Virus record (IMG/VR): IMGVR_UViG_3300017991_005548
Span: 186,001-250,000 of that record
DNA length: 64,000 nt
Strand: one strand, 5' to 3'
Shown here: piece by piece, positions 8,656 to 56,749 of the stretch
How positions within the stretch are numbered: position 1 is the first letter of the stretch
Layout of the letters: every line of letters begins with the position of its first letter
The notes under the pieces: generated by a model
Database searches by the model: none
Told to the model about the DNA's origin: nothing
The model's input: only the letters and a program-made list of their open reading frames with translations
Position numbers and translations under genes: made by a program

Positions 8656-9666
8656 TTAGTCTTCCTTATCGTTTAACTTTTTTCTTTCTTGGTTTTTGAC
8701 TTTTTTGACACAACGCTCATATTTTTCAGGATCTTTGTCCTTATCGACTGTAGTGTGGCAAACTGCCCAAGGATTGTACTCAAAACTTTCAGCTTCTTCA
8801 GTTGACTTTTTCTTGGCGGTACAAACACTACATTGTCCAGCATCGCTCTCTTTCTTCTTTTTGCCTTTTCTTTTTCTTTTGGCGACATGTTGTGGGTCTT
8901 CTTTCTCAAGAAAAATTTGAGAATCGAGCTTACCTGATGGATTCTTGCCATGAGGTTGGTTCATGATCTTCCCAGGTTTACAAATTTTGATAATCCTGCC
9001 CTTACCACTCGCCAATGGGTAGTCTTCTACTCTTGGTGGAACATAAGATGCAAACTTATCTCTTATTGTTTTGAGTTTTTCAAGTAGGTTGGTGTATTTT
9101 TTGTCATACTCTTCCCAATGTTGGACGAACTTATCATCAACACCTCTCATCTCTTCCATTTCCTCATCAAGTCCTTCAGTCTCCTCACCAATACTTCTTT
9201 CAAGAAGTTTAATGAATTGATTCATGTCAACAAGTTTACTTGAGAAAAGGTCATAAAGATCTTTGTCGAATTTGTCCCCCATACTACTTTGAGAATGCCA
9301 AAGTCGATGATTATCTAGGAACAGAGCTTCTTCAAGAGGCTTCCCACTCAAAAGCTTGTAATAAATTCTTCTTGCAAGATAATCAGAACTTTCTGGTGCT
9401 TCATGAGAGAAGCCATTGAAGTATTCAGATTCTTGGGCTGTTTCAACAAATAACTTAATCAATTTGGTCATTTCTTCGTAAGACACAAACCTTTCCTGAC
9501 TATTAACCCAATTCTTGATAGTTCCTTCATCTACATACAAGTCACATTTTGGGCAATATCTCCCCTTCTCGTAACCATCACCCTCAGGGGTTTTCTTTTT
9601 AACCCAATAGGATTTATGATCAAGTATATTGCATCCAGAATCTTGTGCAGTTCTAATTAGCCTCAT
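8656..9666 (-). CDS. Hypothetical leader-bearing protein (MRLIRTAQ)
   Basis: CPKC and CSVC motifs, C-terminal NPWAVC...YERCV. Confidence 0.75.
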   Translation of the reverse strand: MRLIRTAQDSGCNILDHKSYWVKKKTPEGDGYEKGRYCPKCDLYVDEGTIKNWVNSQERFVSYEEMTKLIKLFVETAQESEYFNGFSHEAPESSDYLARRIYYKLLSGKPLEEALFLDNHRLWHSQSSMGDKFDKDLYDLFSSKLVDMNQFIKLLERSIGEETEGLDEEMEEMRGVDDKFVQHWEEYDKKYTNLLEKLKTIRDKFASYVPPRVEDYPLASGKGRIIKICKPGKIMNQPHGKNPSGKLDSQIFLEKEDPQHVAKRKRKGKKKKESDAGQCSVCTAKKKSTEEAESFEYNPWAVCHTTVDKDKDPEKYERCVKKVKNQERKKLNDKED

Positions 9667-9677
9667 TCCTGCACCTC

Positions 9678-10421
9678 TTAAGATAGAATTTCTTGATAAT
9701 CAACTGAGTAGTTGACAGTTAGCCCAGCCGTGTTGGTTTCAATCTTTATCGCTTCGTCCAAAGAAAGAAGGTGAGGGTCACTATTGTAATGAGACAAATC
9801 AGTATTGGCAGTTTCATCAATTATTGCCGTTTCTGCATCCAAGCCAGGAACCGCAGTATCACTTGTGATTGATGCGGCGAAGCTTGTGTTCTCATTAAGT
9901 CCGAAAAGATGTCCAGCTATACTATACTGATCTGGCAAAGTTCCGTGCTCGTTAAACTCCAAATATTTAATTGTTCCTGAGCTAGGGGTAACTGTATATT
10001 CCCCAGTTGCGGCATCATATGCTACTGTAAAAGTCAAGCCCAATGCACTAAATGCTGAATTAGCATCCATTTGAGTTTCGAGTTCAGTTGCAAGTTCAGT
10101 ACCTGTGTAGAATCCAGTGTCTAATGTGATCTTCTGAGGTAACGTTTGAGGTGTCTGGAACCAAAGAAAATCATTTAAGTTTTCAAGAACGCTCCTGCCA
10201 CCAATAATACTTGCAGAATAATCTTTTGCGTTAGCATTGCTGAAGGCAAACTTAATGCCAACCACTTTCCAGTCGAGATTAGGAGAAAGTACTGTATCAA
10301 TAGCTGAAGCAGTAATATCAGCAACACCTTTGAGACTTTTTACGGTATCTTTCTTAGTTATCGCATCGACAGGAGTTGGCAAAGCTCTGAACACTCTATT
10401 AGGATAATATTTTATGGCCAT
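9678..10421 (-). CDS. Probable virion structural protein, 247 aa
   Basis: Ala/Thr/Ser beta-rich composition; first gene after an AGG-N19-GAA motif. Confidence 0.65.
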   Translation of the reverse strand: MAIKYYPNRVFRALPTPVDAITKKDTVKSLKGVADITASAIDTVLSPNLDWKVVGIKFAFSNANAKDYSASIIGGRSVLENLNDFLWFQTPQTLPQKITLDTGFYTGTELATELETQMDANSAFSALGLTFTVAYDAATGEYTVTPSSGTIKYLEFNEHGTLPDQYSIAGHLFGLNENTSFAASITSDTAVPGLDAETAIIDETANTDLSHYNSDPHLLSLDEAIKIETNTAGLTVNYSVDYQEILS

Positions 10422-10502
10422 TATATACTCCTTAGGTTAAATGAAAATAATGTTCGGTATATATTTCAAGAGATCACCCCCTTTACCCTTCTAGATATTA
10501 TA

Positions 10503-10538
10503 AAAGAAAACCCCTCCTACGAATGCAGGAGGGGTTCC
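10503..10538 (-). terminator. Rho-independent terminator
   Basis: AACCCCTCCT/AGGAGGGGTT stem followed by TTCTTTT. Confidence 0.8.
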
Positions 10539-10542
10539 TATC

Positions 10543-10875
10543 TTACGCCAGTGGAAATCCTTTAAAGTATTGCTCACCTTGTTCTTTGGTCATCGGATAG
10601 AAGGCTACAGCAGTCCAGCCGAATTCTTCGGGATAGTAAGTGTCATAGAAGAAGCGCATTTTTACGCCATCTTCTTTGGCTTTCTCAACAATGAATTCGG
10701 CTCTTCTTTTCTTAGCCTGAACCATGACCAAAGTCTGATCATAATTCACCCATTGTCCCATCCCTTCGTCCTATCCGTAGTCAAAGGTCAGCTTAGCCAA
10801 AGCATGAGCACCTTGGACTTTTCGCTGATCTCGACTAAGTTCAGATTTCGTCAATACAAAAACACACGTATCCAT
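10543..10875 (-). CDS. Pth2-like peptidyl-tRNA hydrolase with an in-frame TAG at 10771-10773
   Basis: GGAGG SD then MDTCVFVLTKSELSRDQRKVQGAHALAKLTFDYG*DEGMGQWVNYDQTLVMVQ...WTAVAFYP. QxxHA, WxN-xTL and TAVAxxP motifs lie on both sides of the stop. Confidence 0.7.
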
Positions 10876-10876
10876 C

Positions 10877-11254
10877 TTAGTCCTCCAATCCAGGAATGGT
10901 TAAATTGTAGTCAGACAGGATCTTCTTAAGCTCTCGAACGGCGAAAGAGTTTTCCCATCGTTCTCCACTAAAATCCGTAAGGAATTCCTGGTCAGACTCA
11001 TAAGAGCCAGTATGGGGGCGATTATGGCGAAGACGATTGTGGATGATATGACAAACAGTGATCCATCCACTACCAGCATAACGATGCTTTTCAAAACCTT
11101 TTTTGAAATCTTCGCGTTGTTCTTTGGAGGATTCGTACTTACCATCGTTCTCAGTAATGTATCCAACGATACAACCTTTGAGATAATCGATAGCTTTTCT
11201 TTGGGCGAGTTCTTCTTCGGACAGGATTGGTTGTTCTTTAACTTCAGTAGTCAT
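10877..11254 (-). CDS. Hypothetical protein, 125 aa
   Basis: AAGGAG SD; lies between the tRNA and the Pth2-like gene. Confidence 0.75.
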   Translation of the reverse strand: MTTEVKEQPILSEEELAQRKAIDYLKGCIVGYITENDGKYESSKEQREDFKKGFEKHRYAGSGWITVCHIIHNRLRHNRPHTGSYESDQEFLTDFSGERWENSFAVRELKKILSDYNLTIPGLED

Positions 11255-11394
11255 TTTTAGTTCTCCTTAATTTGATTTGACTATCTTTCATTACTTCTTT
11301 TGAACGAAAACGATAACCAACTCAAGGAGGACCTCGAATTACCTACGTGAAACCTTTAATTGTAAGAACCTATGTCATACCTTATCCTTTTTTT

Positions 11395-11469
11395 TGGTGC
11401 CCCTGCTGGGACTCGAACCCAGATTAGCAAGGTTAGAGCTTGCCGCTTTTGCCTTTAAGCTACAGAAGC
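11395..11469 (-). tRNA. Amber suppressor tRNA, anticodon CUA
   Basis: GCTTCTG TA GCTT AAAGGCAA AAGC G GCAAG CT-CTA-AC CTTGC TAAT CTGGG TTCGAGT CCCAG CAGGGGC A CCA: full cloverleaf with encoded CCA. Confidence 0.92.
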
Positions 11470-11529
11470 ATCTTCTACAGCCTATTATAACTCATGATTA
11501 CTTGTTGTCAAACTACTTTAAGAGATTTT

Positions 11530-12738
11530 TTAGAATCTTCTCCTAGAGTGTCTGGAAGCAACTGTTTTGGCTCCTTTAGAGTTCCTTCTGGATTGAGTTG
11601 GAACCTGCCTGTCGCCTTCTCTAATCGCAAATTCTTCACTGGCATGAATGTCAGATGCATACTGAGTTTCCCCCGATCCATGAAAAGATCTTCTAGTGTT
11701 GCCAGACAAAGTATTAATACTTCCTCCACTGGCAGTTGCTGGTCTGGAATTTCCTCCAGCCATCCTTAACATACGCATCTCTTCAGAATCTCCAGCCAAG
11801 TCAGTCGCTTCAAGATCAAGCATGGTTGCATTTGTAACGCCTCTTTCCCCACTTACTGTCGTCCCGTGAGTATAAATGTCATCTTCAGCTTCATATCTTG
11901 AATCATAAATCTCTAAACCAGGAACATACACTTCGTTCATATCTCCCGCGTTCTTAAGTAAATGATTCGCTTCATTTGGAGAAATGATACGGATTAATTT
12001 TTGCTTGAACAAATGCCAAAGATCTCGACTACTGGCAAGCTTTCTAGCTGAAACTGTTCCAAGATTCTTAGGCATATTTAATGGAAGATCTAACCCAATA
12101 TCGTTAATGGTTAAAGAAGCACAGTTCTCATTAACAACATAAGCATCCATTCCAATGGATTCCTCCATTGCCTTTCTCTCCATTAGCATTGCCTTCTCTT
12201 TCTTTACATTAATAGGGTCATCAGCGAAGATTTCAACTTGAATGTCTGATCTTTTATCCTTTGAATCTTTCACTGCTGATATCAACTCTTGATACGTCTT
12301 GATATAAGATAAGAAACTTGGATCTTGTGTTTGTTCAAACTGTCTGGGAACTTCCAACTCATCAGGAGTATAATAAGACCTATTGTTTTGACCTGGCTCT
12401 GGGGGCTGAGTCGCCGCTAATCTGTCAACAGGAGTCCTCTGTTGGTTCGAAATAGCTCCAACACCTGCCGTTTGCTGTTGATTATTGGAAAATATGTGAG
12501 AAACCGATGCATTCATCCCACCCTGGTCAATTGATGTCGGGGTGATCATAATACTAGTTTCCTTACTCATTAAATCATCAGCATTAATCTGATTATTACT
12601 ATGGTCTGAGAGGATTAATGTCCCTTCTCCCTTACCAGAATTAATTGAGTCAGCAGTTAAGACAATACTTCCGCCGTTTTGTAAGATGTTTCTCATCTTT
12701 TTACTCAAACTTATTTTACACTTTAAAGCAATTTGCAT
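11530..12738 (-). CDS. Hypothetical protein, 402 aa
   Basis: Long ORF, no recognised motif. Confidence 0.75.
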   Translation of the reverse strand: MQIALKCKISLSKKMRNILQNGGSIVLTADSINSGKGEGTLILSDHSNNQINADDLMSKETSIMITPTSIDQGGMNASVSHIFSNNQQQTAGVGAISNQQRTPVDRLAATQPPEPGQNNRSYYTPDELEVPRQFEQTQDPSFLSYIKTYQELISAVKDSKDKRSDIQVEIFADDPINVKKEKAMLMERKAMEESIGMDAYVVNENCASLTINDIGLDLPLNMPKNLGTVSARKLASSRDLWHLFKQKLIRIISPNEANHLLKNAGDMNEVYVPGLEIYDSRYEAEDDIYTHGTTVSGERGVTNATMLDLEATDLAGDSEEMRMLRMAGGNSRPATASGGSINTLSGNTRRSFHGSGETQYASDIHASEEFAIREGDRQVPTQSRRNSKGAKTVASRHSRRRF

Positions 12739-12749
12739 AATTTTTCTCC

Positions 12750-14225
12750 TTAAGCTCCATTTAACTCCATGATTCTTTTATAGACATTATCTATGGCCTG
12801 ATCCCAGGTGTAGAACTCTTCTAAATCTGACCTTAAATTATCAGCTTTGTCCAAAGAATCCTCGTAGTTTTCAAACACATATCTCATATGTGCTTTAGTT
12901 TCTTCAATCGCATTCCTTCCAAAATTTGGGAAGGTTTGGTCTTCATAAAAACGGCAGTGTTTTGCTAGTTTTCTCAGATGACCATTTGTTTCTGCTGTTA
13001 CAAGACCGTCTGGTGCAACCATATATGCATTGCTGTCGTTTAAGAAATCTGAATGACCAGAACAATCGCTTGCAATTACGGGCATTCCACTTGCTCCAGC
13101 TTCTGCATATGGAAGTCCAAATCCCTCACCGCGAGAGATTAAAACAAAGGCATCAGCAGAACCATAGATATTGGGCATATACCTTTCTGGAATCTCGTTA
13201 TCATACAAAGCGATATGAGGCAACTCATCATCACTTTTATTTATAGATTCTCTAATTCCTGCGAAATCTTTCTGGATCTGGTTTTGATCATTAAAAGCTT
13301 CTGCTCTGGATACAAGAAGTAATGTGACATTGTCATCTGCCGAAAATTCTTCCATAAATGCTTTTAGAAGTATGTCGTAACCTTTTCTATATCCCCATTT
13401 GAATACACTTAGAAAGACAAAATCATTTAACTCCTGATTGAAATCGAAATCTTTTCTGTCAGGAGTGTATCTATCCACATCAACTCCTAAAGGCATAACC
13501 AAAACTGGGGGATGAACCCCATTTTGCTTAAACATTTCTTGAGCGAATCTAGTTGGAACCCATATCTCATCAAAGAGATTAAGCTTCCCAACATAATCTG
13601 GATGCAGAGAACCAGAAGTTTCCATCATTGTGTAAAGAATTCTCCTTCCACCATGGAACATATTCAAAGGTATCGTAGCTCCAAATATTTTTGGGGCATT
13701 GTCAGCAATGGCTGTTCTACTCATTCTTCGAATTTGCTTCTCAGTTTCTTCATTCACATGAACATCTGACTCCTGAATATCAAGCTTAACTCTTAATCCT
13801 CTATTAGCAAGTCCAAATGCAAAGGCTCTATTCATTCGACTAAACCCTGCATAACTGGTGAAATGCCCGTACCAATGAACACTTGGGTTATTACTCAGGT
13901 CATAATTTATGTTGTAGGACTCTTGCACTTTTACCTCCCGTATAGGAATTTTTTTGGGCTTTATCTCTCTACTCTCTTTAACTGTGGGTTTATGACCTTT
14001 TAAAGCATCATATTCTTCAATTAAAGACACTGTTCCATTTGACCCATCCGATTCAATAACTACTGTTTGAAATTCTTGAGGGCCATCTGGATGCTTCCAA
14101 CACTCAACAAAATCTGGCAGTTCAATATCTGGATCGTCATTTTCAGTATTTAGAATCTTCATCTCTGGCTTTGGCACTATGACTCTTTCACATGCCAATT
14201 CATATGCCGACTTAATTTTTGACAT
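12750..14225 (-). CDS. GT-B glycosyltransferase, family 4-like
   Basis: SRGEGFGLPYAEAGASGMPVIASD and KWGYRKGYDILLKAF motifs. Start uncertain (14225 or 14240); the ORF-track start at 14411 overlaps the divergent gene. Confidence 0.85.
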   Translation of the reverse strand: MSKIKSAYELACERVIVPKPEMKILNTENDDPDIELPDFVECWKHPDGPQEFQTVVIESDGSNGTVSLIEEYDALKGHKPTVKESREIKPKKIPIREVKVQESYNINYDLSNNPSVHWYGHFTSYAGFSRMNRAFAFGLANRGLRVKLDIQESDVHVNEETEKQIRRMSRTAIADNAPKIFGATIPLNMFHGGRRILYTMMETSGSLHPDYVGKLNLFDEIWVPTRFAQEMFKQNGVHPPVLVMPLGVDVDRYTPDRKDFDFNQELNDFVFLSVFKWGYRKGYDILLKAFMEEFSADDNVTLLLVSRAEAFNDQNQIQKDFAGIRESINKSDDELPHIALYDNEIPERYMPNIYGSADAFVLISRGEGFGLPYAEAGASGMPVIASDCSGHSDFLNDSNAYMVAPDGLVTAETNGHLRKLAKHCRFYEDQTFPNFGRNAIEETKAHMRYVFENYEDSLDKADNLRSDLEEFYTWDQAIDNVYKRIMELNGA

Positions 14226-14304
14226 AAGTAGAATTTGCATACCCTTTTGTGCATTATACATATTTTCAGGGTATAATTTAGTAAACCGCATAGGAGAACA
14301 GACA

Positions 14305-14628
14305 ATGAAAAGATGGGAAGCTGTAGGTAAAAATGATAGTGAGATCAATGAAGATGACATCAATTGGGAGTTGGTAAAAAACAGAGTCAAGTCTCTCCAA
14401 TTAAACAACAATGGTCAAATCATCCGTTTGCCTGACAATATGGAATATATACAAGGGAAGACTGCCAGTGCCAATCTTATGGGTGGAAAAGTTCAGATTG
14501 AATCTAGGTATGTTGGCATAAAAGTTGGAAATAATATAGTTAAGATACGAGTGGATGAAAAAACCAACGATATTTCCATAGAGGTAGAAGATGACCCCAA
14601 TTACATACCTAATCCAAAACAGGACTAG
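14305..14628 (+). CDS. Hypothetical protein, 107 aa
   Basis: GGAG SD before MKRWEAVGK; divergent TATAAT promoter at about 14273. Confidence 0.7.
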   Translation: MKRWEAVGKNDSEINEDDINWELVKNRVKSLQLNNNGQIIRLPDNMEYIQGKTASANLMGGKVQIESRYVGIKVGNNIVKIRVDEKTNDISIEVEDDPNYIPNPKQD

Positions 14629-15016
14629 AATTCCCATCAATACTTTGGATGCAAAGTCCTTAACATTTGGTATGGTGGCTCCAAACGAAACGGCCCAAAC
14701 CAATATCGTACAGCTTTATGTACCAGATGCCGCCGCAATTACCAATATTCGACTTGCATTAATCGATACTGGAGGTATAATGTTTGGATCTACTACTTTT
14801 GGAGTAGATAACAGATCGTTTATCGACAATAATGTAGTACCCGAATCATTTTTTCAAGGTGTTAGCGACAAAAGCGTAAATTCGCCTTACAATATATCAG
14901 TAGCAAACCTAAATAGATTAGCCAGTGAGTACATATATCTGAATGTGGATATCCCAATTGGTCAAACTTTTATCGCTGGAACAATAAGATATCAATGGCT
15001 TTTTGACTATGCATAG
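14591..15016 (+). CDS. Hypothetical beta-rich protein, 141 aa
   Basis: GAGGT SD; operon with the CCA enzyme. Confidence 0.65.
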   Translation: MTPITYLIQNRTRIPINTLDAKSLTFGMVAPNETAQTNIVQLYVPDAAAITNIRLALIDTGGIMFGSTTFGVDNRSFIDNNVVPESFFQGVSDKSVNSPYNISVANLNRLASEYIYLNVDIPIGQTFIAGTIRYQWLFDYA

Positions 15017-15023
15017 GGGTAAT

Positions 15024-17030
15024 ATGAGAGTACAAATACAACCAACAAAAGACGAACAAGAGCTTTTTGAACTATTAAGGAATACAGTTAAGAAAGTGGC
15101 CCCTGGAACTTCATTAAGAGTTGCAGGCGGGTGGGTTCGTGACAATCTTCTAGGGAAGAAGTCAAATGACATTGATTTCATGGTTGACAACATGTCTGGA
15201 GAGCAAATTGCTCGATTAATCACAAATGAGCTTGGTCTAAGTGGACCCCATGTTGTTCAAGCAAACCCAGATGCCTCCAAACATTTGGAAACCGCTGGAG
15301 CAGAAATCCCCATATCAAATGGCAAGGTGTTTGATCTTGATTTTGCCATCGCAAGACAAGAAATTTACCATGATGACTCAAGAATTCCTGAGATCAAACC
15401 AGCGACTCCAGAAGAAGACGCTTTCAGAAGGGATTTGACCATTAATTCTATGTTCTACAATATTATGACTGGAGAACTGGAAGATTTCACTGGAAGAGGA
15501 ATGGAAGATCTTAAGAGTAGAACAATTAAAACTCCTGAAGACCCACTGAAAACATTCAAAGATGACCCTTTAAGAATTTTCAGAACTATTCGTTTCGCTT
15601 CAAGGTACAATGGTAATATTGACCCAGAAACACTTTCTGCTATGAATAATCCAGAATTACATAGCGAAATTAGAGAAAAAGTGTCAAAAGAGAGGATTCA
15701 AGAGGAACTCTTCAAAACAATGAAGGGACCAAATCCTCTGATGGCCATCAATTTGCTGAAAGAAACTGGCATATTCAGAGACATCATAGAAGATGCTGTC
15801 AAAGGTAGTAAATTTGAAGGAAAAATCGCTCCACTTGACATGGAGCAGAACAATCCTCATCATGAGCTAACGGTTTGGGGTCACACCCTAAAAGTTGTCG
15901 AAAATCTGTTGATGTACTATCCAGACACAGATCCTGAGAAACGTGCTATCATGATCCTAACAGCGGTTATGCATGATTTAGGGAAGCTTTATTACGACAT
16001 TCATGTCGATAAGGGGGATCAAACTTCTTACTATGGACATGCAGACGCTAGTGGTGAAATTGCTGAGATGATTATGCGTTACTTGAAGTTTAATAACAAA
16101 ATGATTGATCAAGTCTCCAAGATGTCAAAGCATCATATGAGAGTTCACTTGGTTGAAAATGACAAAAACTTAAGTGGCGAAGGAAAACGTTTGGCATTTT
16201 TCAGAAAATTTATTAGAAAGATGCTGGCTGAAGGTATCGATGCGATGGACATAATGAATCTTTCTATTGCTGATGCTTATAGCAAAGGTCACAAAATTGT
16301 TGATCCTTCAGTAGTTAAAAACTATCAACTTTTAAAAACTCAACTTGAGCAGGCTTTGGCTTCAATAAGTGTTGACCAAAATCAAAAGAAAGTTGTCCCA
16401 GTGTTGAATGGACGAGAAATTATGACTATTCTAAACATTAATCCTGGGTGCATGGTTGGTGATGCGACTAGATTTGTTTATGAGTTAATGGATGAGAATC
16501 CTAAAATCACCAAAGATGAGGCCGCAGAAAGATTAGTTGAAGAGTTCGCACACAAAATTGACAACGAAGAAAAAATTAGGCAAGCTTCTGCATGTCCAAA
16601 GCATCTTCTGTTTAGCAAGATTGATGAAATAAAAGAAGCGATTAATGATGAGAATTGTGACAGAGCAATTACAATTATGACCACTCTCAAGAAAGAGAAT
16701 GAAGATGACGAAAGTGTATATGCAGAAATTGCGAACCGTATGCTTGATGTCTTGCTTATAGACCGTTCGAAAAGGAACTTTGAACTTCTAGGTTATGTAT
16801 TTGACAAAGCAATAGATAACTTCTTTGATGTAGAAGTTTGCATACCTGTTCTTGGAATCTTGTTACTCTTAAAGACAGGTACAAAAGAAGAGCATATAGA
16901 AACATTATGTGAAAGAATGAAGAACATGGCGAATGATAAATTACAAGTCATGTTAAAGAAATTACCTGATGATGCTTATCATAAGAAATTCATAAAAAGG
17001 TTAAAGAATGGAAGATGTAACTGCAAATGA
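15024..17030 (+). CDS. cca: Class II tRNA nucleotidyltransferase (CCA-adding/poly(A) polymerase family) with HD domain
   Basis: VAGGWVRD..DIDF, EDAFRRDLTINS, DDPLRIFRTIRF, SKERIQEEL, then HHELTVWGHT and MHDLGK. Confidence 0.88.
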   Translation: MRVQIQPTKDEQELFELLRNTVKKVAPGTSLRVAGGWVRDNLLGKKSNDIDFMVDNMSGEQIARLITNELGLSGPHVVQANPDASKHLETAGAEIPISNGKVFDLDFAIARQEIYHDDSRIPEIKPATPEEDAFRRDLTINSMFYNIMTGELEDFTGRGMEDLKSRTIKTPEDPLKTFKDDPLRIFRTIRFASRYNGNIDPETLSAMNNPELHSEIREKVSKERIQEELFKTMKGPNPLMAINLLKETGIFRDIIEDAVKGSKFEGKIAPLDMEQNNPHHELTVWGHTLKVVENLLMYYPDTDPEKRAIMILTAVMHDLGKLYYDIHVDKGDQTSYYGHADASGEIAEMIMRYLKFNNKMIDQVSKMSKHHMRVHLVENDKNLSGEGKRLAFFRKFIRKMLAEGIDAMDIMNLSIADAYSKGHKIVDPSVVKNYQLLKTQLEQALASISVDQNQKKVVPVLNGREIMTILNINPGCMVGDATRFVYELMDENPKITKDEAAERLVEEFAHKIDNEEKIRQASACPKHLLFSKIDEIKEAINDENCDRAITIMTTLKKENEDDESVYAEIANRMLDVLLIDRSKRNFELLGYVFDKAIDNFFDVEVCIPVLGILLLLKTGTKEEHIETLCERMKNMANDKLQVMLKKLPDDAYHKKFIKRLKNGRCNCK

Positions 17031-17616
17031 AGTCGCTTCATACGTTGAGGCATTAAATGTAGCCAATATGGATGGCGAGATAAAGAAACCAGAAGTGCTT
17101 GGAGTTTTGCAATCTCTTCCATCCCCAAATCACATCAAAAGATACTTATCAAATGAAGAAGCAAGAGTCTTGTTTGAAAGCATCCGATGGATTTGGAAAG
17201 AAACAAGTGGTAAAGATATTAGTGAGACATTTAATTTCGAGCCTGCTCCAGAATCATTGCTAGGAAATTACTGGATGCTAAGGAATGGTCTGATCTTTCA
17301 TGGTATCAACCATTATGGCATCATTAAAAGAAATATGACGCTCTTTTCTAACGTCCTGAAGTTAGAGCCGTTTGTACTGCATCAGAAGCTTGCAGGCATA
17401 CCACAAGACCTAATTAAGTACGTTATAGACAATGGGGGGATGAGAATCTTCGTTACGGCTGACAAAAGAGCATATTTCCAAATGAATGATCAGGTTTATG
17501 CCAATTGGGGTAGGGCCAAAGTTAAAGGACTGGACTTCGGAAACAAAGTGGTCAAACTTGTTGACCCCACTACCCGATTTGACGGTTGGAACTCTGGAAT
17601 TACCTTAAAACTCTAG
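17008..17616 (+). CDS. Hypothetical protein, 202 aa
   Basis: Coupled to cca; convergent stop overlaps the next gene (CTAG). Confidence 0.7.
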   Translation: MEDVTANEVASYVEALNVANMDGEIKKPEVLGVLQSLPSPNHIKRYLSNEEARVLFESIRWIWKETSGKDISETFNFEPAPESLLGNYWMLRNGLIFHGINHYGIIKRNMTLFSNVLKLEPFVLHQKLAGIPQDLIKYVIDNGGMRIFVTADKRAYFQMNDQVYANWGRAKVKGLDFGNKVVKLVDPTTRFDGWNSGITLKL

Positions 17617-19370
17617 TTCATAAAGAACGGGTCATCATCATCGTCGTCGTCATCAAATTCTACAGGTGGCAGATCTTCCTCAGGATGTTTTCTCTTAGGT
17701 GGCAATGGTTCGTCTTTCGTTGAAGGGCCAAACAATGATGCAAGTTCTGCTTCAAAATCTACATCATCCCATATCAACTCATCAAGATCTTCTTCTGCAC
17801 CAGGAGAAAGTGGGTCTGATGGATCAACTTCTGCACCATCGATAGCATCTCCAGTACCTTCATCAATGTCACCAGCATCTTTGTCTTCTTCATCTGTTTC
17901 GGTTTCCCAGAAACCAGTTTCATCCAACTGATCTTTGAATCGATTCAGAATTTCTTTCGCTTCTTCTTGATCACTAATAATATAACTTGATGCTTCGAAA
18001 AGCTCTTGTACTGGTCCAGCACCCATATATCCAACCAATCCTAATCCAACGATATCTTCTGGTTTACATTGCATGAATCTTCTGAAGTTCTCAGGACCAA
18101 TCTGCATTTGCATTTGCTCATTTACCAATTCATCTGATTCTTTTAGAATGGCAATCGCCTCTTCCATCTCCAAAGGACGTTGTCCTCTGCTTGCTCTAGA
18201 CTCATTGTCCAATTGGTGATCAGTTGCTTTTGAGAAAATACCCTTGGTAAGTTCCTGACAAATAATAATAAAGTTCATACCTTGAGCTACAGTGTTACCT
18301 TCATCATCATTATGACTCCAACCAGTTCCTTTTTGGCCTAACTGATCAGCCATCATCCTAACCATCTCTGGATCGATGTAATAAAAATGCTGACACATCA
18401 AATTAGAGAACTTTTCATAAAGTCCTAAGAGTTGAGGATTAATGTCATTGATCGCACCTTGGACTTCTTCCATCTCAGTTACATCAAATAATTCATTAAG
18501 TCCTGCGCCTTGAGCCAATGAATTCATGATGATGCGTTTGTTAATTTCACCTTCAAGTTCTGGAGTTATTTCAATATCTACTTCTGGGAAGTCTTCTTCA
18601 CCTGAAGGACCCATCTCTTCCATATATTTGATTTCTAACTCATCCCTATCAACATTCCATTTACGAGAGATAACGTCTTTTGCGAGGTCCATCAACTGCT
18701 CTTCATTTCCTTGTTCCAAAGCTTGGATTTCTCTAAGGAGTCCAAGAATCTGCATCATAACTTGTTGAATGTTAGTGTTTACAGGGATATCCTTCTCTTC
18801 TGCAATATTCGTAATATATTCATAGTTTGCGCGAGCTAGTTCATCACCATAATGAGAAAGCACTGGATTTTGAGAAAGGATATTGTTTTGAGGAATATCT
18901 TGCCAGAAATTTCTTACACCTCTTTGTACTGAGGCATCGTAATCAGCGGCGGCGACCTTCTGTTCAAGAAGACGGATTTCGTAACCACTTATCTTTTTTT
19001 TTAACTCCGAAGTAATGGTCGGCAAGTTATCAGGGGATACTTGTGCGGCCAATGGAAGATCTTCTTCTGGTTCTTCAGCTTTAGGTTTTGGTTGTACGAT
19101 AGGTTTAGGATTACGTGGTCTTCTTTTCCCAGGTTTTCCAGGCTTAGTCTTTTCTCCTGGTGTAGTTCTGGGTTTGGTTGTTGGAGCGGCTGGAGCAGGT
19201 CCTGATCTTTCGGTTGATGGAGCAGGTTCAGCTTCTCTTACCATATCTTCTGCTTGAACAACTAAATTGCCATCTTCGTCTAGCCATCCAGCTTTTTTAC
19301 CAAATTCTTCCCAATCTTTTTGAGACAATTTAACGGTCTTTTTGCCATTGGCGTTTTTTATAATTTTCAT
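17613..19370 (-). CDS. Leader-bearing protein, 585 aa (MKIIKNAN), Pro/Lys-rich linker, acidic tail
   Basis: Long ORF after an AGG-N19-GAA motif. Confidence 0.8.
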   Translation of the reverse strand: MKIIKNANGKKTVKLSQKDWEEFGKKAGWLDEDGNLVVQAEDMVREAEPAPSTERSGPAPAAPTTKPRTTPGEKTKPGKPGKRRPRNPKPIVQPKPKAEEPEEDLPLAAQVSPDNLPTITSELKKKISGYEIRLLEQKVAAADYDASVQRGVRNFWQDIPQNNILSQNPVLSHYGDELARANYEYITNIAEEKDIPVNTNIQQVMMQILGLLREIQALEQGNEEQLMDLAKDVISRKWNVDRDELEIKYMEEMGPSGEEDFPEVDIEITPELEGEINKRIIMNSLAQGAGLNELFDVTEMEEVQGAINDINPQLLGLYEKFSNLMCQHFYYIDPEMVRMMADQLGQKGTGWSHNDDEGNTVAQGMNFIIICQELTKGIFSKATDHQLDNESRASRGQRPLEMEEAIAILKESDELVNEQMQMQIGPENFRRFMQCKPEDIVGLGLVGYMGAGPVQELFEASSYIISDQEEAKEILNRFKDQLDETGFWETETDEEDKDAGDIDEGTGDAIDGAEVDPSDPLSPGAEEDLDELIWDDVDFEAELASLFGPSTKDEPLPPKRKHPEEDLPPVEFDDDDDDDDPFFMN

Positions 19371-21913: not shown

Positions 21914-22228
21914 TTATTTTTCTGGTTTGGGTTGTGGAGGTTGGGGTCTGCCTTTTCCATGGCCTCTCATGCCTTTTCCAGGGCCATTACCATGTCTTCC
22001 CCTCATGCCTTCACGATGACGCTTCATCCTTTCTTTCATCATAGCAGTTAACTCTGAACGATCTAACTTACCATCTTTGTCAACGTCAAAGTTTTCCATG
22101 ACTCTGTCCAATACCTTTTCCAAACACTTCTCTGGACTTGGACGTTCAGGGCGTTCGGGTCTCTCGGTTTCTTGGGCTGAAAGAGTGCAGGCAAAAACTA
22201 GGGCGAGTAATACGATTAATGCTTTCAT
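21914..22228 (-). CDS. Secreted EF-hand protein, 104 aa
   Basis: Signal peptide MKALIVLLALVFACTLSA-QE; EF-hand loop DVDKDGKLDRSE; AAAGGAG SD. Confidence 0.75.
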   Translation of the reverse strand: MKALIVLLALVFACTLSAQETERPERPERPSPEKCLEKVLDRVMENFDVDKDGKLDRSELTAMMKERMKRHREGMRGRHGNGPGKGMRGHGKGRPQPPQPKPEK

Positions 22229-22354
22229 AATAAGATCTCCTTTATTAAGCAATGAATTTGTTAACGCAAGTGCTGTGCCAAATGTTTTATTGGGTAAATG
22301 GTCACTATAGTGCGCAAATATTAGAATTTTGGTAAAAATAGTGCGCAAAATATG

Positions 22355-22684
22355 CTATCTAAACTCATTTCCCCATTTGTCGAGGTTTTCGTATGGTATT
22401 GTAAACAAATAATCTTCAACTTTGCTTGAACGTGTCCCAAAAGAGACATCATAATATATCCCATCACATTTGACTAAAGCGTGGTTAACTCCATCCTTTC
22501 TACAAACAACAACATCTGCTTTGTATCCCGCTTCTCTTAATGCTTTGCAATACCTTCCACACAGATTACTGCAATCATTGGCATTGGGAATCTTCTTTTC
22601 TTTATTAAGTGACCAGAAAATATCTGGTAATGGTATTTTTTGAAAATTTAGTAATTTGTATAAGAACGATTTGAACCATTTCAT
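22355..22684 (-). CDS. Small transglutaminase/papain-fold protein
   Basis: NDCSN...NHAL...YYD Cys-His-Asp pattern. Confidence 0.55.
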   Translation of the reverse strand: MKWFKSFLYKLLNFQKIPLPDIFWSLNKEKKIPNANDCSNLCGRYCKALREAGYKADVVVCRKDGVNHALVKCDGIYYDVSFGTRSSKVEDYLFTIPYENLDKWGNEFR

Positions 22685-22690
22685 GATCAC

Positions 22691-37841: not shown

Positions 37842-40070
37842 TTACTCTTTTGGTGCTTGATTTTGAATAGCCATTTCCTTTTTCATAATTGTCTGCACAA
37901 TTTTACTCATTGCCTGCTGTGGCTGTTTCTCTATCTCACTATCTTTAAACCTTAAAACAGTCCAGCCCATCTGGGCAAGTTGCCTATCTCTTTCTTGGTC
38001 TTTTTGAATCTGTTTTGGAGAATTGTGAAAAATCTCTCCATCTGCTTCAATAATAAGTCTCAAATGAGGGAGGGCAAAGTCTACAGGATGTTCCATATTT
38101 CCTATCATAATCTTATACTGAGGGATAATAGGATATTTAATAATCCCGTCTTTTTGATGTTGAACCATATGATCCATCAATTCTCTTTCAATTTTTGTAA
38201 AAGCGATTCTCCCCTTCTCATCTCTTACCTGTCCATCTTTCCCTTGCGAATAGGAAGATGGTTTTGCGGTCTCTGAACGCATTTTCTTTTGCTCAGAAAC
38301 TAATTTATCTCTGGTTTTCTTTTTCAAAACCTTTCCGCCAAATTGTGATGGATCAGCAACTTCCGCAGTCAATGGCCCTGTTTTTGCCAATACGGGTTCT
38401 CCACCTGTTGGTGCGGCTGGCGCTCCACCGAGATCTCCTCCTGGCTCAATAGGGGGTTCTCCCCCCATACCTCCCATTCCACCTCCAAGATCCATGCCTC
38501 CTGGCATTCCGCCGAAGCCACCACCCATGTCTCCTCCAGGCTGTTGCCCCATACCTTGTCCAAGGGCCATCATTTGAACGGCATCATAGCGTTTTCTTTC
38601 AATTTCTTGATCTGGGTCAATATCAAATGCTTCAAGAACAGTCTGCGCACTAACAAGACCCTTCTCGTACAATTGAATAATAAATGTTCTGTATTGCTGT
38701 TGATCTCTAAGATGCATGGAGTTCCATTTAATCTTAGGAACCAGATACTCTTCTTCTCCCGTCTCAGGATTTGTATCAATAAACCCTTGTCGTTTAGCTT
38801 CTGGGAGATATAGGAAATCTGTTATCCAATCAGCTATTTGACTTCTAAATGTGTCCAACCTGTGAATCATAGCTTCAATACCAACAGAAGCGCTTGCAAA
38901 TGTTGGACCTTCACCATTAAGAAGAGCATTGTTAATCATCATACCATCAAGGACTTCCTGATTGATGAATTCAAACTCATTACTAAGAGTAAGAACTTTG
39001 CCAGAAGCACCCACCCAGTCAAAATCAAATGCATGGTGTGTGACAATGGTAAGGTTAGGGTCATTAGCAGTTTCGGCAAGCTGTGCTTGTACAGCGGCAA
39101 TATCGGCAGGTCCAGCAGGACGTTCATCACTACCGACTTTAACAATCTTAATAGGAACGATTAGACGTTCTGCAACGATCCACTGAGCTACCATGAGCTT
39201 AGTTTTATATGAAAGTATAGGGAATAATCTACGGACCATTCCGATTCCATAACGAGTATATCCACTTTCACCATATTTCAAGTGAGAAACGTTACGATTA
39301 TCTAATCGGATAGGCTGACCTGACGAAACAAGTGCGATTACATCTGGAGAAAGTTTCTCATATCCAGGTGTTTTTCTCTGGACCATATTGATGAGTTCTT
39401 CATCTGGTTTCAAAGCGATAATCGGGTCAGGATTTAAAGGTGGGGTATAGACATCTACAAAGTCAGGGTTAAGGATGACCATTCTTCTGACCGTTCCTCC
39501 CTCATGATCGCAAATAATATCTCCGACCATTCCAGAGCCTCCACAATGCTCACAATGGATTTCTGCAAATGGGAAGCAATCGCCAAGCAAATGGACTTCA
39601 TGACTTATCAAACGACACCATTTAGTCAGTTCGAGTCTTTTTTTGAATTTATCAAAGTATAACTTAATCTCTCTATCTTTACACTCATGTTCCCAATCAC
39701 TCATTGGAAAATAACTGTAGAAATCAATTGCAGAAGCTACCTTGGGTTCGTTTTCATAGAAGAATCTTGCCCATTGATATTGTTCTATTCTTTTACTTGG
39801 GATCTGCCAGTTGATTGGAGTATGAACTGGGGAGAAAAATTGAGGCTGACCATAAATAGTTCCTGCACTTGCTACGGAACTAAATTTCGCCATACCATTT
39901 CCCCATTGGGTACTGGCACCAGTCGTTGGGGCATAGTTTTGTCTTGGGATAGGTCGATATGATTGGTGCTGTGGAACCTCGCTGGTAGCGAGTTTAGCGG
40001 GATCTCTATTTCTTAATGCTCTAAAAGTCTCTTCTAGATTGGTAGTTTGTAGGTGAACTTGCATGCACAC
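37842..40070 (-). CDS. Portal protein fused to a C-terminal DUF559/Vsr-like endonuclease-fold domain
   Basis: VASAIDFYSYFP, LNPDFVDV, LYEKGLVSAQTVLEAFDID portal-like pattern; G/M/P linker; VDFALPHLRLIIEADGEIFH...RDRQLAQMGWTVLRF. Confidence 0.75.
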   Translation of the reverse strand: MCMQVHLQTTNLEETFRALRNRDPAKLATSEVPQHQSYRPIPRQNYAPTTGASTQWGNGMAKFSSVASAGTIYGQPQFFSPVHTPINWQIPSKRIEQYQWARFFYENEPKVASAIDFYSYFPMSDWEHECKDREIKLYFDKFKKRLELTKWCRLISHEVHLLGDCFPFAEIHCEHCGGSGMVGDIICDHEGGTVRRMVILNPDFVDVYTPPLNPDPIIALKPDEELINMVQRKTPGYEKLSPDVIALVSSGQPIRLDNRNVSHLKYGESGYTRYGIGMVRRLFPILSYKTKLMVAQWIVAERLIVPIKIVKVGSDERPAGPADIAAVQAQLAETANDPNLTIVTHHAFDFDWVGASGKVLTLSNEFEFINQEVLDGMMINNALLNGEGPTFASASVGIEAMIHRLDTFRSQIADWITDFLYLPEAKRQGFIDTNPETGEEEYLVPKIKWNSMHLRDQQQYRTFIIQLYEKGLVSAQTVLEAFDIDPDQEIERKRYDAVQMMALGQGMGQQPGGDMGGGFGGMPGGMDLGGGMGGMGGEPPIEPGGDLGGAPAAPTGGEPVLAKTGPLTAEVADPSQFGGKVLKKKTRDKLVSEQKKMRSETAKPSSYSQGKDGQVRDEKGRIAFTKIERELMDHMVQHQKDGIIKYPIIPQYKIMIGNMEHPVDFALPHLRLIIEADGEIFHNSPKQIQKDQERDRQLAQMGWTVLRFKDSEIEKQPQQAMSKIVQTIMKKEMAIQNQAPKE

Positions 40071-47574: not shown

Positions 47575-49959
47575 TTACTCTCCAAAATCCAATATTTTAT
47601 CTAATTCATACTTCTTAAAAAGTTCCTGGGCTTCCTCTTCATTGAGTGACTCTATCTTTGCCTTCGCAAACTGCAAGAAGTCAACAGAATACTTTTCCAA
47701 AAGAACGGGAGCGTATTTTCCAATAGCTTCCTCTAATTCACTATCAATATCAAGACCAAGCTTGATTGACAAATACAACGCTCTCAATATAATGAATGGG
47801 TTGAATGACAATACATCATCTGCATCCATGACCGTTTCGATATAATTATCTCCATTAAAAGGAGTGATGAACGATCCAGTGTAAGGGTTATATCCTCTAG
47901 CATTAATAGTGAAATCCTTGTTGCAAATATCATGCAATACATGGCTGGAAGAATCAAGATCCTGTTTTTTCATCCATCTCTCGATAGTTGGGATCTTTTG
48001 TCCTCCATTGAAACAAATCTTCACGCCTTTGTGATTAAAACAAAAACATCTAGTTGCTGGATCAATCTCAGAGACCTGTTCTCCCAATTCTTCAGCCAAC
48101 AAACTTCCGAATTTATGGCAGTTTTGGGATGAATCACTTGTAAATTCAAGTTCCTCAACTTCTGGAGATCTGTTCCCAAAAGATTTCTCTCTTGCATAAG
48201 AACCGATAGCATAAACATCTTTGATATCGTATTCATGAGCCACACTCTTTGCGGCATCCATAATGCAACTAATAGCATCTTCAAGCGTTGGTCTGCAACC
48301 AACAACCTTTGACATAATCTCTCTTAGTTGTTCATCATTGTTCTGAATAGCATCTTCGACTTTTTCAATTTCTTCACTACCAACTCCCCTATGAATCCAG
48401 CAGGAGTATATCTCTTCTCCATCGGACTCTCCCAAAGAAAACATATCGACTCCAATAGGACTGCGCCCCATTGACTTTTCAATAACTGACAACATATCTT
48501 CACTACAAACAATCCTAGTTGCCTTCATATCGCCCCTAAGAATGATTGATCGTATTTTTCTCAACATATCAACAATATGTCCAAGCCCACCCGAAGCAAA
48601 ACGTTTTGCAGGATGAGTGTTGCTTAAGTCTCTTGTTGAATCAAACCAACTCTCTGGTTTGAACCTTGGCTCGATCCATCTGTAATAAAACCCCTTGATG
48701 TCATATGTTGGGTTATATCTAGGTTGTGACTTTATCCAGTCCTCTTCTTCTGAAAAACATTCATCTCTGTCATCCCAGGCCATGACTCTGTCACCTAACC
48801 CAGGAATAGTTGATCCATCAGAAATTTCGAGATTATTGTACCACCCAAAAACTGTCGCCATCTTTGTCATCTTTGATGCTTGCTTTAAAGGCATCATCAA
48901 TGGTTGTGGTCTAGTATCTTCCAGAAGATCTTCAGTGATTCTATATCCAGTATCGTCTTTGAGCCTGTCTTTGTCAAGCAATTCTTCAAAAATGAGATCA
49001 GGATCTAATTCCCAATCACCTTCAGTAAATTTCCTCAACTGAACTTCATAGATGTCATGTTCTGGAGATAGGTCTGGAGGGAGTGGAGCCTGATACTGTC
49101 TGCCAAGCATTTCTTCGATTGCTCGATTTTGATATTGATGGGCGATCATACCCCAATCTGGTTGGGCCTGGAAATTTGCTCCATGATCACCATATCTTCC
49201 TGACAAATCAGATCCTGAGGGAGGATAGAATGGAAAGTGGCTTTGAGCTTCTTTATACCAATTATTTGAGGCTCCTTGCCTTAAACTTAGTTCACCCTCT
49301 ATGCTGTATTTCTGCTGAATCTCTCTCATGGCAGATTCAAGTAATGCTGTCTCAACTTGAGTTGGACCTGCTTCGTCTTCTGCCCCTTTAGCATGAGTGG
49401 CTTCGTGAGCCATTGTAGCGGCCATGTGAGCTATCATAAGATCTTGTCTTAGCTCTGCATGCATTTCTGGTGGAACGATGTCCTGAAGGTTCCTAAAGGA
49501 TTGCTCCATCTCATTACGAGTGTCTGCTACATTCAGTCCTAGAACTGATCCTCCTTTACTTTCTAGATCAGCATATACTTGCTGGATTTCATTACGGATA
49601 GTTTCTTGGTCTTTCTCTTCTTTAGTGTCATACGCTCGAAGCATTCCATCTTCTTCGACAATTTCATAACCTCTTGATTCAAGTCTTTTTTGAAGTTCTT
49701 GGGTTTTGACTGCCCTATCTAGTGACGGAACATAAACTCCATAAACACCAGCTTTCGCGAAGTTGAACATATAAACAATATTCTGCAAAAGATTTGAGTC
49801 GAATCGATTGACTAAGTCAACTGATTTCTGGGCATCGCCAAATTGGGAAGAGATGTTGGAGATGTTAACACTTGGGCTTCCGATCAAACTACCTTTATAC
49901 TCTGGAGCATCACCAGAGTAATACCCTCCGTAGTCTTGAGATACTTTTATGATTTTCAT
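47575..49959 (-). CDS. Leader-bearing (MKIIKVSQ) zincin-like metallopeptidase fused to a degenerate CCA/PAP-like nucleotidyltransferase
   Basis: AHEATHAKGAEDE; C-terminal YAIGSYARE..ELEF, NKDFTINA, FNPFIILRA. Confidence 0.7.
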   Translation of the reverse strand: MKIIKVSQDYGGYYSGDAPEYKGSLIGSPSVNISNISSQFGDAQKSVDLVNRFDSNLLQNIVYMFNFAKAGVYGVYVPSLDRAVKTQELQKRLESRGYEIVEEDGMLRAYDTKEEKDQETIRNEIQQVYADLESKGGSVLGLNVADTRNEMEQSFRNLQDIVPPEMHAELRQDLMIAHMAATMAHEATHAKGAEDEAGPTQVETALLESAMREIQQKYSIEGELSLRQGASNNWYKEAQSHFPFYPPSGSDLSGRYGDHGANFQAQPDWGMIAHQYQNRAIEEMLGRQYQAPLPPDLSPEHDIYEVQLRKFTEGDWELDPDLIFEELLDKDRLKDDTGYRITEDLLEDTRPQPLMMPLKQASKMTKMATVFGWYNNLEISDGSTIPGLGDRVMAWDDRDECFSEEEDWIKSQPRYNPTYDIKGFYYRWIEPRFKPESWFDSTRDLSNTHPAKRFASGGLGHIVDMLRKIRSIILRGDMKATRIVCSEDMLSVIEKSMGRSPIGVDMFSLGESDGEEIYSCWIHRGVGSEEIEKVEDAIQNNDEQLREIMSKVVGCRPTLEDAISCIMDAAKSVAHEYDIKDVYAIGSYAREKSFGNRSPEVEELEFTSDSSQNCHKFGSLLAEELGEQVSEIDPATRCFCFNHKGVKICFNGGQKIPTIERWMKKQDLDSSSHVLHDICNKDFTINARGYNPYTGSFITPFNGDNYIETVMDADDVLSFNPFIILRALYLSIKLGLDIDSELEEAIGKYAPVLLEKYSVDFLQFAKAKIESLNEEEAQELFKKYELDKILDFGE

Positions 49960-55932: not shown

Positions 55933-56749
55933 AATATTCCTCCAATATATAAACACAACCATTGTCTGATGGACAAAAGGTCAGAATTTTATTTCCAACC
56001 TTATATATTTCAAACAAATGAGTCGCATCTCCTTCAGAGGAAAGCATATGCACAGTATTGTCACTTAAAAAGAAAAGTTTGTTCTTGACATAATATATGT
56101 CTTTTAGGTCTTTGCAGTCATCGATAATTGTGTACGTTGAGTTTTTTCGTATCCCCCTTAAGCAATTGTTACCACTGTCTGCAAAACAGACAGTTTTTCC
56201 CATTATTGCAACTCCAGTTGGTTTAGAAATCCTCGTATTTTTTAAATTTGATATTGAGAATCCAGCCTTACCACAACCTATAAGTGGAAAGGCGTTCTCC
56301 TCATTCATTATAAAGCATCTGTGACAATTTGTAGTGCTCCAGATGACTTGATTTTCTAATGAAGTTACATAAGTCCTTGAGTCGCTTCTTCCAAGGACTT
56401 TTCTTCTAAATTGTTTAGCACTGTTTTTTGAGATCAAATTCTCAAAATCCATCAACTCCAAATCGACTTTGTGAATTCGGCTACCACCTTCTGAAACTAT
56501 ATATAAACAATCATAACTGGAATTATAGCATATCGAACTGAAAGTTGAAAAGTCTGGCTTCTCAGTATATGTGAGTTCATAACGCCAATCAGGATTGCAG
56601 TCGCCATTATTCATCTTTCCTATGCCATCATCATGTAGGAAAAACAGATTATCCCCAACACAACAAAAATCCTTGATCTCGAAGTTGATCTCGAAATTTC
56701 GTTGTTTTCGGGTGGTAAGGTTCTTTTCTGTAAGTTTATAGATCATCAA
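55898..56749 (-). CDS. Beta-propeller (NHL-like) protein
   Basis: KPTGVAI...FADSGNNCLRGI. Confidence 0.6.
   Translation of the reverse strand: MMIYKLTEKNLTTRKQRNFEINFEIKDFCCVGDNLFFLHDDGIGKMNNGDCNPDWRYELTYTEKPDFSTFSSICYNSSYDCLYIVSEGGSRIHKVDLELMDFENLISKNSAKQFRRKVLGRSDSRTYVTSLENQVIWSTTNCHRCFIMNEENAFPLIGCGKAGFSISNLKNTRISKPTGVAIMGKTVCFADSGNNCLRGIRKNSTYTIIDDCKDLKDIYYVKNKLFFLSDNTVHMLSSEGDATHLFEIYKVGNKILTFCPSDNGCVYILEEYYVESPEEAESY

Follow-up and report, generated by a model that had tools for sequence, protein, structure and literature searches.

Does an amber codon inside a phage gene for a peptidyl-tRNA hydrolase-like (PTH2-like) protein, encoded together with an amber suppressor tRNA, represent damage, a tolerated defect or a means of control? 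The locus lies in a stretch of DNA of 64,000 nucleotides, analysed in full and called the window here, which has a GC content of 39% and is part of a 524,692-bp metagenomic contig from a huge phage. A preliminary description of the window, made without database searches, had proposed that full-length PTH2 is produced only when the suppressor is active. Comparison of the locus with its relatives indicates that the TAG has most likely been selected as a translational switch and did not arise by error.

Organization of the locus

The unit, as read from its sequence, consists of a consensus sigma-70 promoter followed by tRNA-CUA, ORF-X, PTH2 and a terminator (Table 1). The PTH2 frame begins at an ATG (10875-10873) located one base past the TAA of ORF-X (10879-10877), with a GGAGG 7 nt upstream, and continues for 110 codons to a TAA at 10545-10543 with a single TAG inside (10773-10771). 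The 3' end of the tRNA is 520 nt upstream of this ATG on the same strand. All coordinates given for the frame in the preliminary description hold, and the CUA tRNA it placed about 520 nt upstream is found there by ARAGORN at 11469-11395 (-). The single base between the ORF-X stop and the PTH2 start suggests that translation of the two genes is coupled.

Table 1. Features of the tRNA-CUA/PTH2 unit and the neighboring CCA-adding enzyme gene, in window positions
Feature	Position	Strand	Evidence or remark
Sigma-70-type promoter, TTGACA-16 nt-TATAAT, 12/12	11484..11511	-	Ends 15 nt upstream of the tRNA
tRNA, anticodon CUA (amber suppressor)	11395..11469	-	ARAGORN; Rfam tRNA 62 bits, E 1e-12
Weak terminator-like hairpin, 10 pairs, 3 G-C	11318..11341	-	Pattern match; between tRNA and ORF-X
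ORF-X, 125 aa, free of in-frame stops	10877..11254	-	Conserved protein of unknown function
PTH2-like gene, N part, 34 codons	10774..10875	-	Includes strand 1, helix 1 and the invariant Q/H pair of QGAHA
In-frame TAG, codon 35	10771..10773	-	Helix 1/helix 2 loop (position from orthologue model)
PTH2-like gene, C part, 75 codons and TAA stop	10543..10770	-	Pfam PTH2 profile positions 42-114 of 115, E 0.012
Intrinsic-terminator-like hairpin, 14 pairs, 7 G-C, T run	10507..10538	-	Directly after PTH2; closes the unit
tRNA nucleotidyltransferase (CCA-adding enzyme)	15003..17030	+	PHROG 2244, E 8e-54; about 4 kb from the module

Perfect matches to TTGACA-16-TATAAT occur twice in the 64 kb, compared with 0.02 expected. 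Counterparts of the promoter are present upstream of the tRNA in relatives, with 12/12 matching positions in L005 and L017 and 11/12 in L031, and terminator-like hairpins also follow PTH2 in L005 and L031. A shared transcription unit, as previously claimed, is supported by the conserved promoter before the tRNA and the conserved terminator after PTH2. The claim is qualified by the weak hairpin after the tRNA, a possible attenuator or processing site at which many transcripts could end. The earlier picture of a partnership between tRNA and PTH2 stands in that both are conserved, and ORF-X has to be added between them as a third conserved gene. A minus-strand gene for 794 aa contains the second perfect promoter match of the window (47766-47793, +), in antisense orientation.

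The type of promoter points to a bacterium as host. A DNA search of GenBank phages with window positions 9000-13000 returned zero matches, and a scan of bacterial and archaeal genomes for the TAG-bearing subfamily found nothing and hence gave no clue from a host or prophage. The genes flanking the module vary by lineage, yet all of them are RNA- or tRNA-handling genes. A histidine phosphatase directly precedes the tRNA in L005, L017 and L021, while PhoH occupies this position in L016 and L030-L032. An RNA ligase is located near the module in L013 and possibly in L024 (by eye, from sequence only), and L005 encodes a 2',5' RNA ligase.

The read-through product

Searched alone, the C-terminal piece of the window protein (75 aa) scores 16.3 bits against the Pfam PTH2 profile, which is under the cut-off, as expected of two thirds of a domain. 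The missing first third of the match corresponds to the N-terminal piece (34 aa, with QGAHA). The orthologue P0003, whose identity to the window protein is 65% and whose gene carries the same TAG, shown as Q in the database, was scored against Pfam PF01981 in place of the window's fused product and reaches 27.4 bits (curated cut-off 23). A full scan of 1.8 billion representative proteins yielded 129 relatives of P0003, and PF01981 is matched by all 31 of the 31 relatives that were aligned (best E 1.4e-13). The family profile aligns end to end with Methanocaldococcus jannaschii Pth2 (2zv3; E 1.9e-11), and with other Pth2 structures too. By these profile matches the read-through product is a member of the PTH2 family, in agreement with the original assignment.

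An AlphaFold model of P0003, built from 31 sequences, has a pLDDT of 97 and a pTM of 0.88. When this model is compared with the PDB using Foldseek, each of the top 15 matches is a Pth2 or Pth2-like chain (E 4e-8 to 5e-5); TM scores are 0.76-0.84 for most of them and 0.78-0.84 for the Pth2 enzymes. Codon 35 is located in the loop between a helix at residues 15-33, which has the invariant Q and H, and a helix at residues 37-46. The preliminary description had placed QGAHA upstream of the TAG and the rest of the fold downstream, and this arrangement is recovered, with QGAHA in the N-terminal piece and an orthologue model that spans the TAG. As modeled, the Pth2 fold extends across the TAG and neither piece is predicted to be able to fold alone.

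Across the family, Q21, H24, W42 and the T-A motif show little or no variation. Opposite the Asp of the 2zv3 D-A-G segment the alignment places an acidic residue, which is D in the window protein. The phage family has a shorter version of the archaeal Gly-Lys-Gly-Lys loop, and the substrate may therefore differ from that of classical Pth2.

Conservation of the in-frame TAG

The window sequence, including the TAG, recurs in four more contigs, two of them from IMG/VR and two other metagenome contigs, which makes five counting the window's own. Assembler contigs of three public runs have zero differences from it at the PTH2 site. The agreement among these contigs speaks against the sequencing error that had been considered at the outset; as the comparison covers assembler contigs, rare variants at the TAG may still exist.

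Among relatives, the TAG is found at one alignment column in 12 distinct lineages (the window; P0003, comprising L001-L004 and L017; L005-L007; L018; L019; L020; L021; L011; L024; L025; L026; and L027). These include close and fairly distant orthologues, whose identity to the window protein is as low as 27-41% for the N part and 19-40% for the C part. Within the closest clade the N part is as conserved as the C part (62-74% identity). Synonymous sites across the 12 lineages are saturated: each degenerate invariant residue is encoded by at least two codons, both invariant Gln columns mix CAA and CAG, and the only invariant codons are TAG and TGG. Since the Gln columns mix their codons while the TAG never varies, the TAG is not drifting among synonyms. 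A stop retained at one position through 12 lineages of this divergence is neither an error nor a recent pseudogenisation.

In a thirteenth lineage, L013, the helix 1/helix 2 loop is enlarged and contains a TAG a few residues from this column, which looks like a separate gain. The TAG lineages are more than one amino-acid change per site apart. A tree of the 110-residue protein contains a well-supported clade of seven TAG lineages and poorly resolved deep nodes, and it fits either a single ancient gain of the TAG with losses or several gains. In other relatives the column is occupied by D, S, N, H, G, E, K, W or L. The W of P0008 was considered as a TGA read as Trp and rejected, as the codon is a true TGG.

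Automatic annotation obscures this gene. For the window, gene callers list only the 72-aa C-terminal ORF, and public databases store the gene either as a shortened ORF of 59-72 aa or as a full-length protein with Q at the TAG column. All five of the five database proteins with this Q that were tested have TAG in their DNA. The internal ATG after the TAG is not conserved, being replaced by GTC, ATA or ATT in relatives, and no conserved in-frame start after the TAG was found among the relatives aligned.

A variant of the L005 lineage (L008:1-1520) has the N part of PTH2 replaced by foreign DNA with an IS605-family OrfB/TnpB gene (477-1352). The similarity to L005 returns precisely at GGA-TAG, immediately past a TTAC of the intact gene, and the other end of the element lies outside the contig. 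TTAC is of the target type used by IS200/IS605 elements.

The suppressor tRNA and its linkage to PTH2

ARAGORN detects no tRNA gene in the 64-kb window other than tRNA-CUA. Its CCA is encoded, its variable loop has 5 nt, and it aligns end to end with the general tRNA model, so the 'Pyl' label assigned by ARAGORN reflects the CUA anticodon only. In the characteristic shape of tRNA-Pyl, a single base separates the acceptor stem from the D stem, the D loop is small, the anticodon stem has 6 bp and the variable loop 3 nt. A tRNA-Pyl identity was rejected for the window tRNA, in which two bases (UA) follow the acceptor stem, the anticodon stem has 5 bp, the variable loop has 5 nt and the T loop is standard. 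The tRNA-CUA genes of the relatives are not Pyl-shaped either. Its A73 and short variable arm gave no clear match to a tRNA identity set.

A tRNA-CUA gene is located upstream of PTH2 on the same strand in 11 of the 11 lineages with at least about 900 nt of upstream sequence (the window, L005-L007, L017, L021, L024, L013, L012, L016/L030, L029, L025 and L031/L032). The tRNA thus accompanies every TAG-bearing relative with enough upstream sequence; at the other TAG-bearing loci this sequence is too short to judge its presence. In L025 the tRNA ends 14 nt before the PTH2 gene. Across 10 lineages, in which mean tRNA identity is 59%, the cloverleaf is held by compensatory changes in 17 of 19 pairs and the CUA anticodon is invariant. 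By this covariation the tRNA is judged to be functional.

At the TAG column, four lineages (L012, L016/L030, L029 and L031/L032) encode N, S or L by a sense codon, and they keep tRNA-CUA beside PTH2. A sense codon in close relatives would have pointed to error or recent decay; the close and fairly distant relatives listed above keep the TAG. Because the four lineages keep the tRNA without the TAG, the partnership of suppressor and PTH2 is older or broader than the gate, the gate is dispensable, and the suppressor must have another role.

The tRNA-CUA genes of L016 (4225-4311) and L030 (4739-4824) have a 13-nt insertion in the variable region that is absent from the close lineage L031 (4754-4826). 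The insertion gives the look of a long arm and causes ARAGORN to misread the L030 anticodon as tct, while the loop is identical to that of L016. In L011, a tRNA-like gene (463-537) lies 40 nt downstream of the TAG-bearing PTH2. ARAGORN assigns it a four-base anticodon (tatg) in an 8-nt loop, the Rfam tRNA score is 34 bits, just above threshold, and the gene may be quadruplet-decoding or degenerate.

ORF-X

The ORF located between tRNA-CUA and PTH2 is conserved across nine aligned lineages and contains a His/Arg-rich motif, H-I-x-H-N-R-L-R-H-x-R-P-H-T-G-S. Its 44 homologues include none with a Pfam domain and none that is annotated. On long contigs, distant homologues again have tRNA-CUA before them and PTH2 after them. 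The AlphaFold model of ORF-X (pLDDT 89.5) is an all-alpha helical bundle for which no usable structure matches were found in the PDB (Foldseek and profile search), BFVD (Foldseek) or the Atlas. A search against PHROG gave one borderline match (E 0.01) to a family of unknown function. The motif, used as a degenerate DNA pattern against IMG/VR, returned this phage alone.

Genetic code of the surrounding genome

ORFs of at least 100 aa called with code 11 cover 93% of the window. Its gene products include a portal protein, a large terminase, a ribonucleotide reductase, a glycosyltransferase, the CCA-adding enzyme and a 1856-aa protein with a head-protease domain. TAA is the stop in 46 of 55 minus-strand gene calls, and TAG is the terminal stop of eight genes of at least 100 aa, terminase included. 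Phages that use code 15 encode a TAG suppressor tRNA, as this phage does. They also have many genes that need TAG as sense and a low coding density under code 11, and neither of these hallmarks is observed within the 64-kb window. When all frames joined by reading TAG as sense were listed, the PTH2-like gene was the sole TAG-bridged gene among about 60, and under code 11 the portal, terminase, protease and ribonucleotide reductase genes have no interrupting stop. Four other candidates for an in-frame TAG (21917-22690, 55901-56956, 17005-17928 and 14080-14808) were rejected, each being a normal stop with a spacer, a further gene or an antisense frame behind it. In a rough listing of about 60 kb of flanking sequence from relatives, no additional TAG-interrupted gene stood out.

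Several genes of the window have other unusual features. The large terminase gene (54097-55962, -) ends in a TAG and the next five in-frame stops are also TAG (down to 53767), so that its first in-frame TAA or TGA comes only 111 codons past its own TAG; an active suppressor could lengthen the protein by at least 27 residues. At 21914-22690 (-), a gene for 111 aa with a terminal TAG is in frame with the next gene, which encodes a signal peptide and a Pro/Gly/Lys-rich tail, across a 45-codon stop-free spacer with a non-coding look by eye, and suppression would fuse the two. The glycosyltransferase that adjoins the module (12750-14411, -; 553 aa) is without an intein in the window, as compared with L005:1-2299, where it has an intein and a LAGLIDADG endonuclease (Pfam Intein_splicing, Hint_2 and LAGLIDADG_3). 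The C-terminal part of the 742-aa portal protein (37845-40070, -), about 100 residues (630-734), matches PHROGs of HNH endonucleases and of unknown function, an unusual fusion. The family match of the 1167-aa ribonucleotide reductase (58175-61675, -) is split into two stretches, which may represent an intein or a large insertion.

Proposed mechanism and alternatives

We consider the locus to be, probably but with real room for doubt, a conserved phage module with an amber-gated PTH2 whose amount follows the ratio of suppressor to RF1, in which the TAG has been selected as a gate or sensor. The process would begin with transcription of the whole unit by the host sigma-70 polymerase. The tRNA would then be cut out of the transcript and charged by a host synthetase, while ORF-X could be made at once. 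At PTH2, host RF1 would stop translation at codon 35 and release a useless 34-residue peptide, until charged tRNA-CUA outcompetes RF1 at the UAG and the full 110-residue PTH2 fold is produced. The level of enzyme would then track the ratio of active suppressor to RF1 and so report suppressor activity. Selection would hold the codon as TAG, and the dependence itself would be the selected property, a gate or sensor and not a tolerated defect. The residue inserted should not matter because this column of a surface loop tolerates many residues, and such tolerance agrees with selection on the gate that the codon provides and not on the amino acid that it specifies.

The same suppressor would also read the natural UAG stops of host and phage genes and send ribosomes past gene ends, which would increase stalling and peptidyl-tRNA drop-off. 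Hydrolase made in proportion could then recycle the tRNAs. This coupling of suppression to peptidyl-tRNA recycling, put forward in the preliminary description as well, is a reasonable reading and the physiological logic that we prefer; it is inferred, as are co-transcription, processing and charging of the tRNA, readthrough, the activity and substrate of the enzyme and the benefit to the phage. More tentatively, and with the balance tipping against it, the unit may be a self-contained module for the control of suppression. In such a module tRNA-CUA would alter the reading of UAG under a strong early promoter, the gated PTH2 would be the sensor and effector that buffers damage or sets the suppression level, and ORF-X would be a new translation factor, such as one that antagonizes RF1 or assists in charging or delivering the suppressor. 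If true, large standard-code phages would possess a compact natural circuit that controls the readthrough of stop codons and is distinct from whole-genome recoding.

Other explanations account for parts of these data. The nearest in kind is a homeostat, in which the PTH2-like enzyme hydrolyses aminoacyl- or peptidyl-tRNA(CUA), so that more suppression leads to more enzyme and in turn to less suppression, at a set level of readthrough. This model fits the anatomy as well as the recycling logic does and would explain the linkage of tRNA-CUA and PTH2 where the TAG is absent (L012, L016 and L029-L032), which suggests a direct tie between enzyme and tRNA. The lysine-bearing loop also differs from that of classical Pth2, and with eight TAG-terminated genes of at least 100 aa, terminase among them, unlimited suppression should be costly. 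It is nevertheless unlikely, as cultured phages carry related PTH2 genes with no tRNA-CUA nearby and, to our knowledge, classical Pth2 enzymes do not act on unblocked aminoacyl-tRNA. Less probable again is genome-wide reassignment of TAG in the style of code 15, as in Lak, crAss-like and other recoded phages, which would make the TAG of PTH2 nothing special. The encoded suppressor and the strong preference for TAA fit a proposed path to recoding (10.1101/2021.08.26.457843), and with 64 of about 525 kb in view, other TAG-containing genes may lie in the remaining 460 kb or so. The coverage already reached under code 11, the lack of a second TAG-bridged gene in the window or of an obvious one in the flanks of relatives, and a TAG that never alternates with Gln codons all count against reassignment. 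So do the head and packaging genes, the usual focus of recoding, which are uninterrupted and include a terminase that ends in TAG.

The two remaining explanations deny the TAG any value. It could be an accident that was made harmless by the adjoining suppressor and persists by descent without a regulatory role, a reading that we hold to be about as doubtful as reassignment. The variability of the loop column, a tree compatible with a single origin and the four lineages that manage without the TAG are all in its favor. However, suppression is never complete and a neutral TAG should vanish fast, yet this one is kept across lineages with saturated synonymous sites that are separated by more than one amino-acid change per site, and the TAG of L013, at another site of the same loop, was apparently gained separately. 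Finally, the gene could be broken or split, or the TAG a sequencing error, so that only the 72-aa C-terminal ORF, or nothing, is made. This reading has the output of automatic callers behind it and is very hard to credit. The sequence recurs unchanged in the contigs described above, the TAG is common to 12 lineages, and the N-terminal 34 codons are as conserved as the remainder. In addition, the internal ATG is not conserved, and the helix with the catalytic motif lies upstream of the TAG in a modeled fold that requires both parts. The preferred reading therefore remains that of an amber-gated PTH2 selected for its dependence on the suppressor.

Comparison with known systems

Jumbo phages are known to carry PTH2 genes, which have been assigned to tRNA repair and ribosome rescue (Iyer et al., 2021; PMC7824862). 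The PTH2 proteins of the jumbo or large phages Pectobacterium phage PcCB7V and Cronobacter phages CR3, CR8 and CR9 belong to the same family and are about 33% identical. The genes of cultured Vequintavirinae adjoin a CCA-adding enzyme gene, the same pairing as in the window, whereas PTH2 genes of cultured phages are uninterrupted and longer (about 150-166 aa) than the window gene with its 110 codons and TAG. ARAGORN found no tRNA-CUA within 2.5 kb of the cultured-phage genes, and no link between them and suppression was found described in the literature searched. That literature, searched in full text, describes neither an amber-interrupted PTH2 nor an operon of tRNA-CUA and PTH2, and a survey of huge phages mentions neither suppressors nor peptidyl-tRNA hydrolases.

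Compared with the archaeal and eukaryotic Pth2 enzymes (2zv3, 3erj, 1wn2, 1xty and human PTRH2/Bit1, 1q7s), the phage family has the same fold (TM 0.78-0.84) and shares the Q-x-x-H-A helix and the T-A-x-A-x-x-P strand. It differs in having only 14-23% identity to them and E/D-P-D in place of D-A-G-x-T.

A stop codon inside a gene for translation or decoding is known from prfB (RF2), which contains an in-frame UGA with a +1 frameshift and senses its own product, and from selenophosphate synthetase genes, which contain their own Sec UGA. As in these genes, the stop in PTH2 would make output report the activity at that codon. Unlike in prfB, the frame is kept and the component sensed would be a tRNA, presumably co-transcribed, and not the gated protein. 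A programmed frameshift of the prfB type was considered for PTH2 and rejected, since homology continues in the same frame directly past the TAG.

Another precedent comes from recoded phages, in which a suppressor tRNA ties the expression of genes with in-frame stops to phage translation factors and stop codons have been proposed as post-transcriptional regulators (Borges/Peters et al., 10.1101/2021.08.26.457843). The 'code change module' of these phages, consisting of tRNA, aminoacyl-tRNA synthetase and release factor, is itself in standard code, and many structural and lysis genes are recoded (10.1101/2021.08.26.457843); the word hydrolase is absent from that paper. Here, too, a phage suppressor tRNA would make expression of an in-frame-stop gene phage-dependent. 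In contrast to recoded phages, the region is in standard code, and the one gated gene, which codes for an enzyme of translation quality control, belongs to the same operon as the tRNA. Neither a synthetase nor a release factor gene accompanies the suppressor in this operon, which consists of tRNA, ORF-X and PTH2 only.

Suppressor tRNAs and PTH2 genes of phages are known separately. The principle of a stop codon that acts as a regulator through a phage suppressor is thus known, and what appears to be new is its single-gene, self-contained and deeply conserved form, within a stretch of genome that is otherwise in standard code, and the link to peptidyl-tRNA hydrolysis. The earlier proposal for in-frame stops rests on genome-wide patterns, which are hard to test. 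The locus described here would be the smallest form of the principle, in which a single tRNA, a single gated codon and a single enzyme occupy about 1 kb downstream of a consensus promoter. It makes direct tests possible of how a phage regulates, monitors or bears the cost of reading through stop codons in a host that uses the standard code. It also suggests that suppressor tRNAs and the hydrolysis of peptidyl-tRNA are functionally connected, and presents ORF-X as a candidate new player in decoding.
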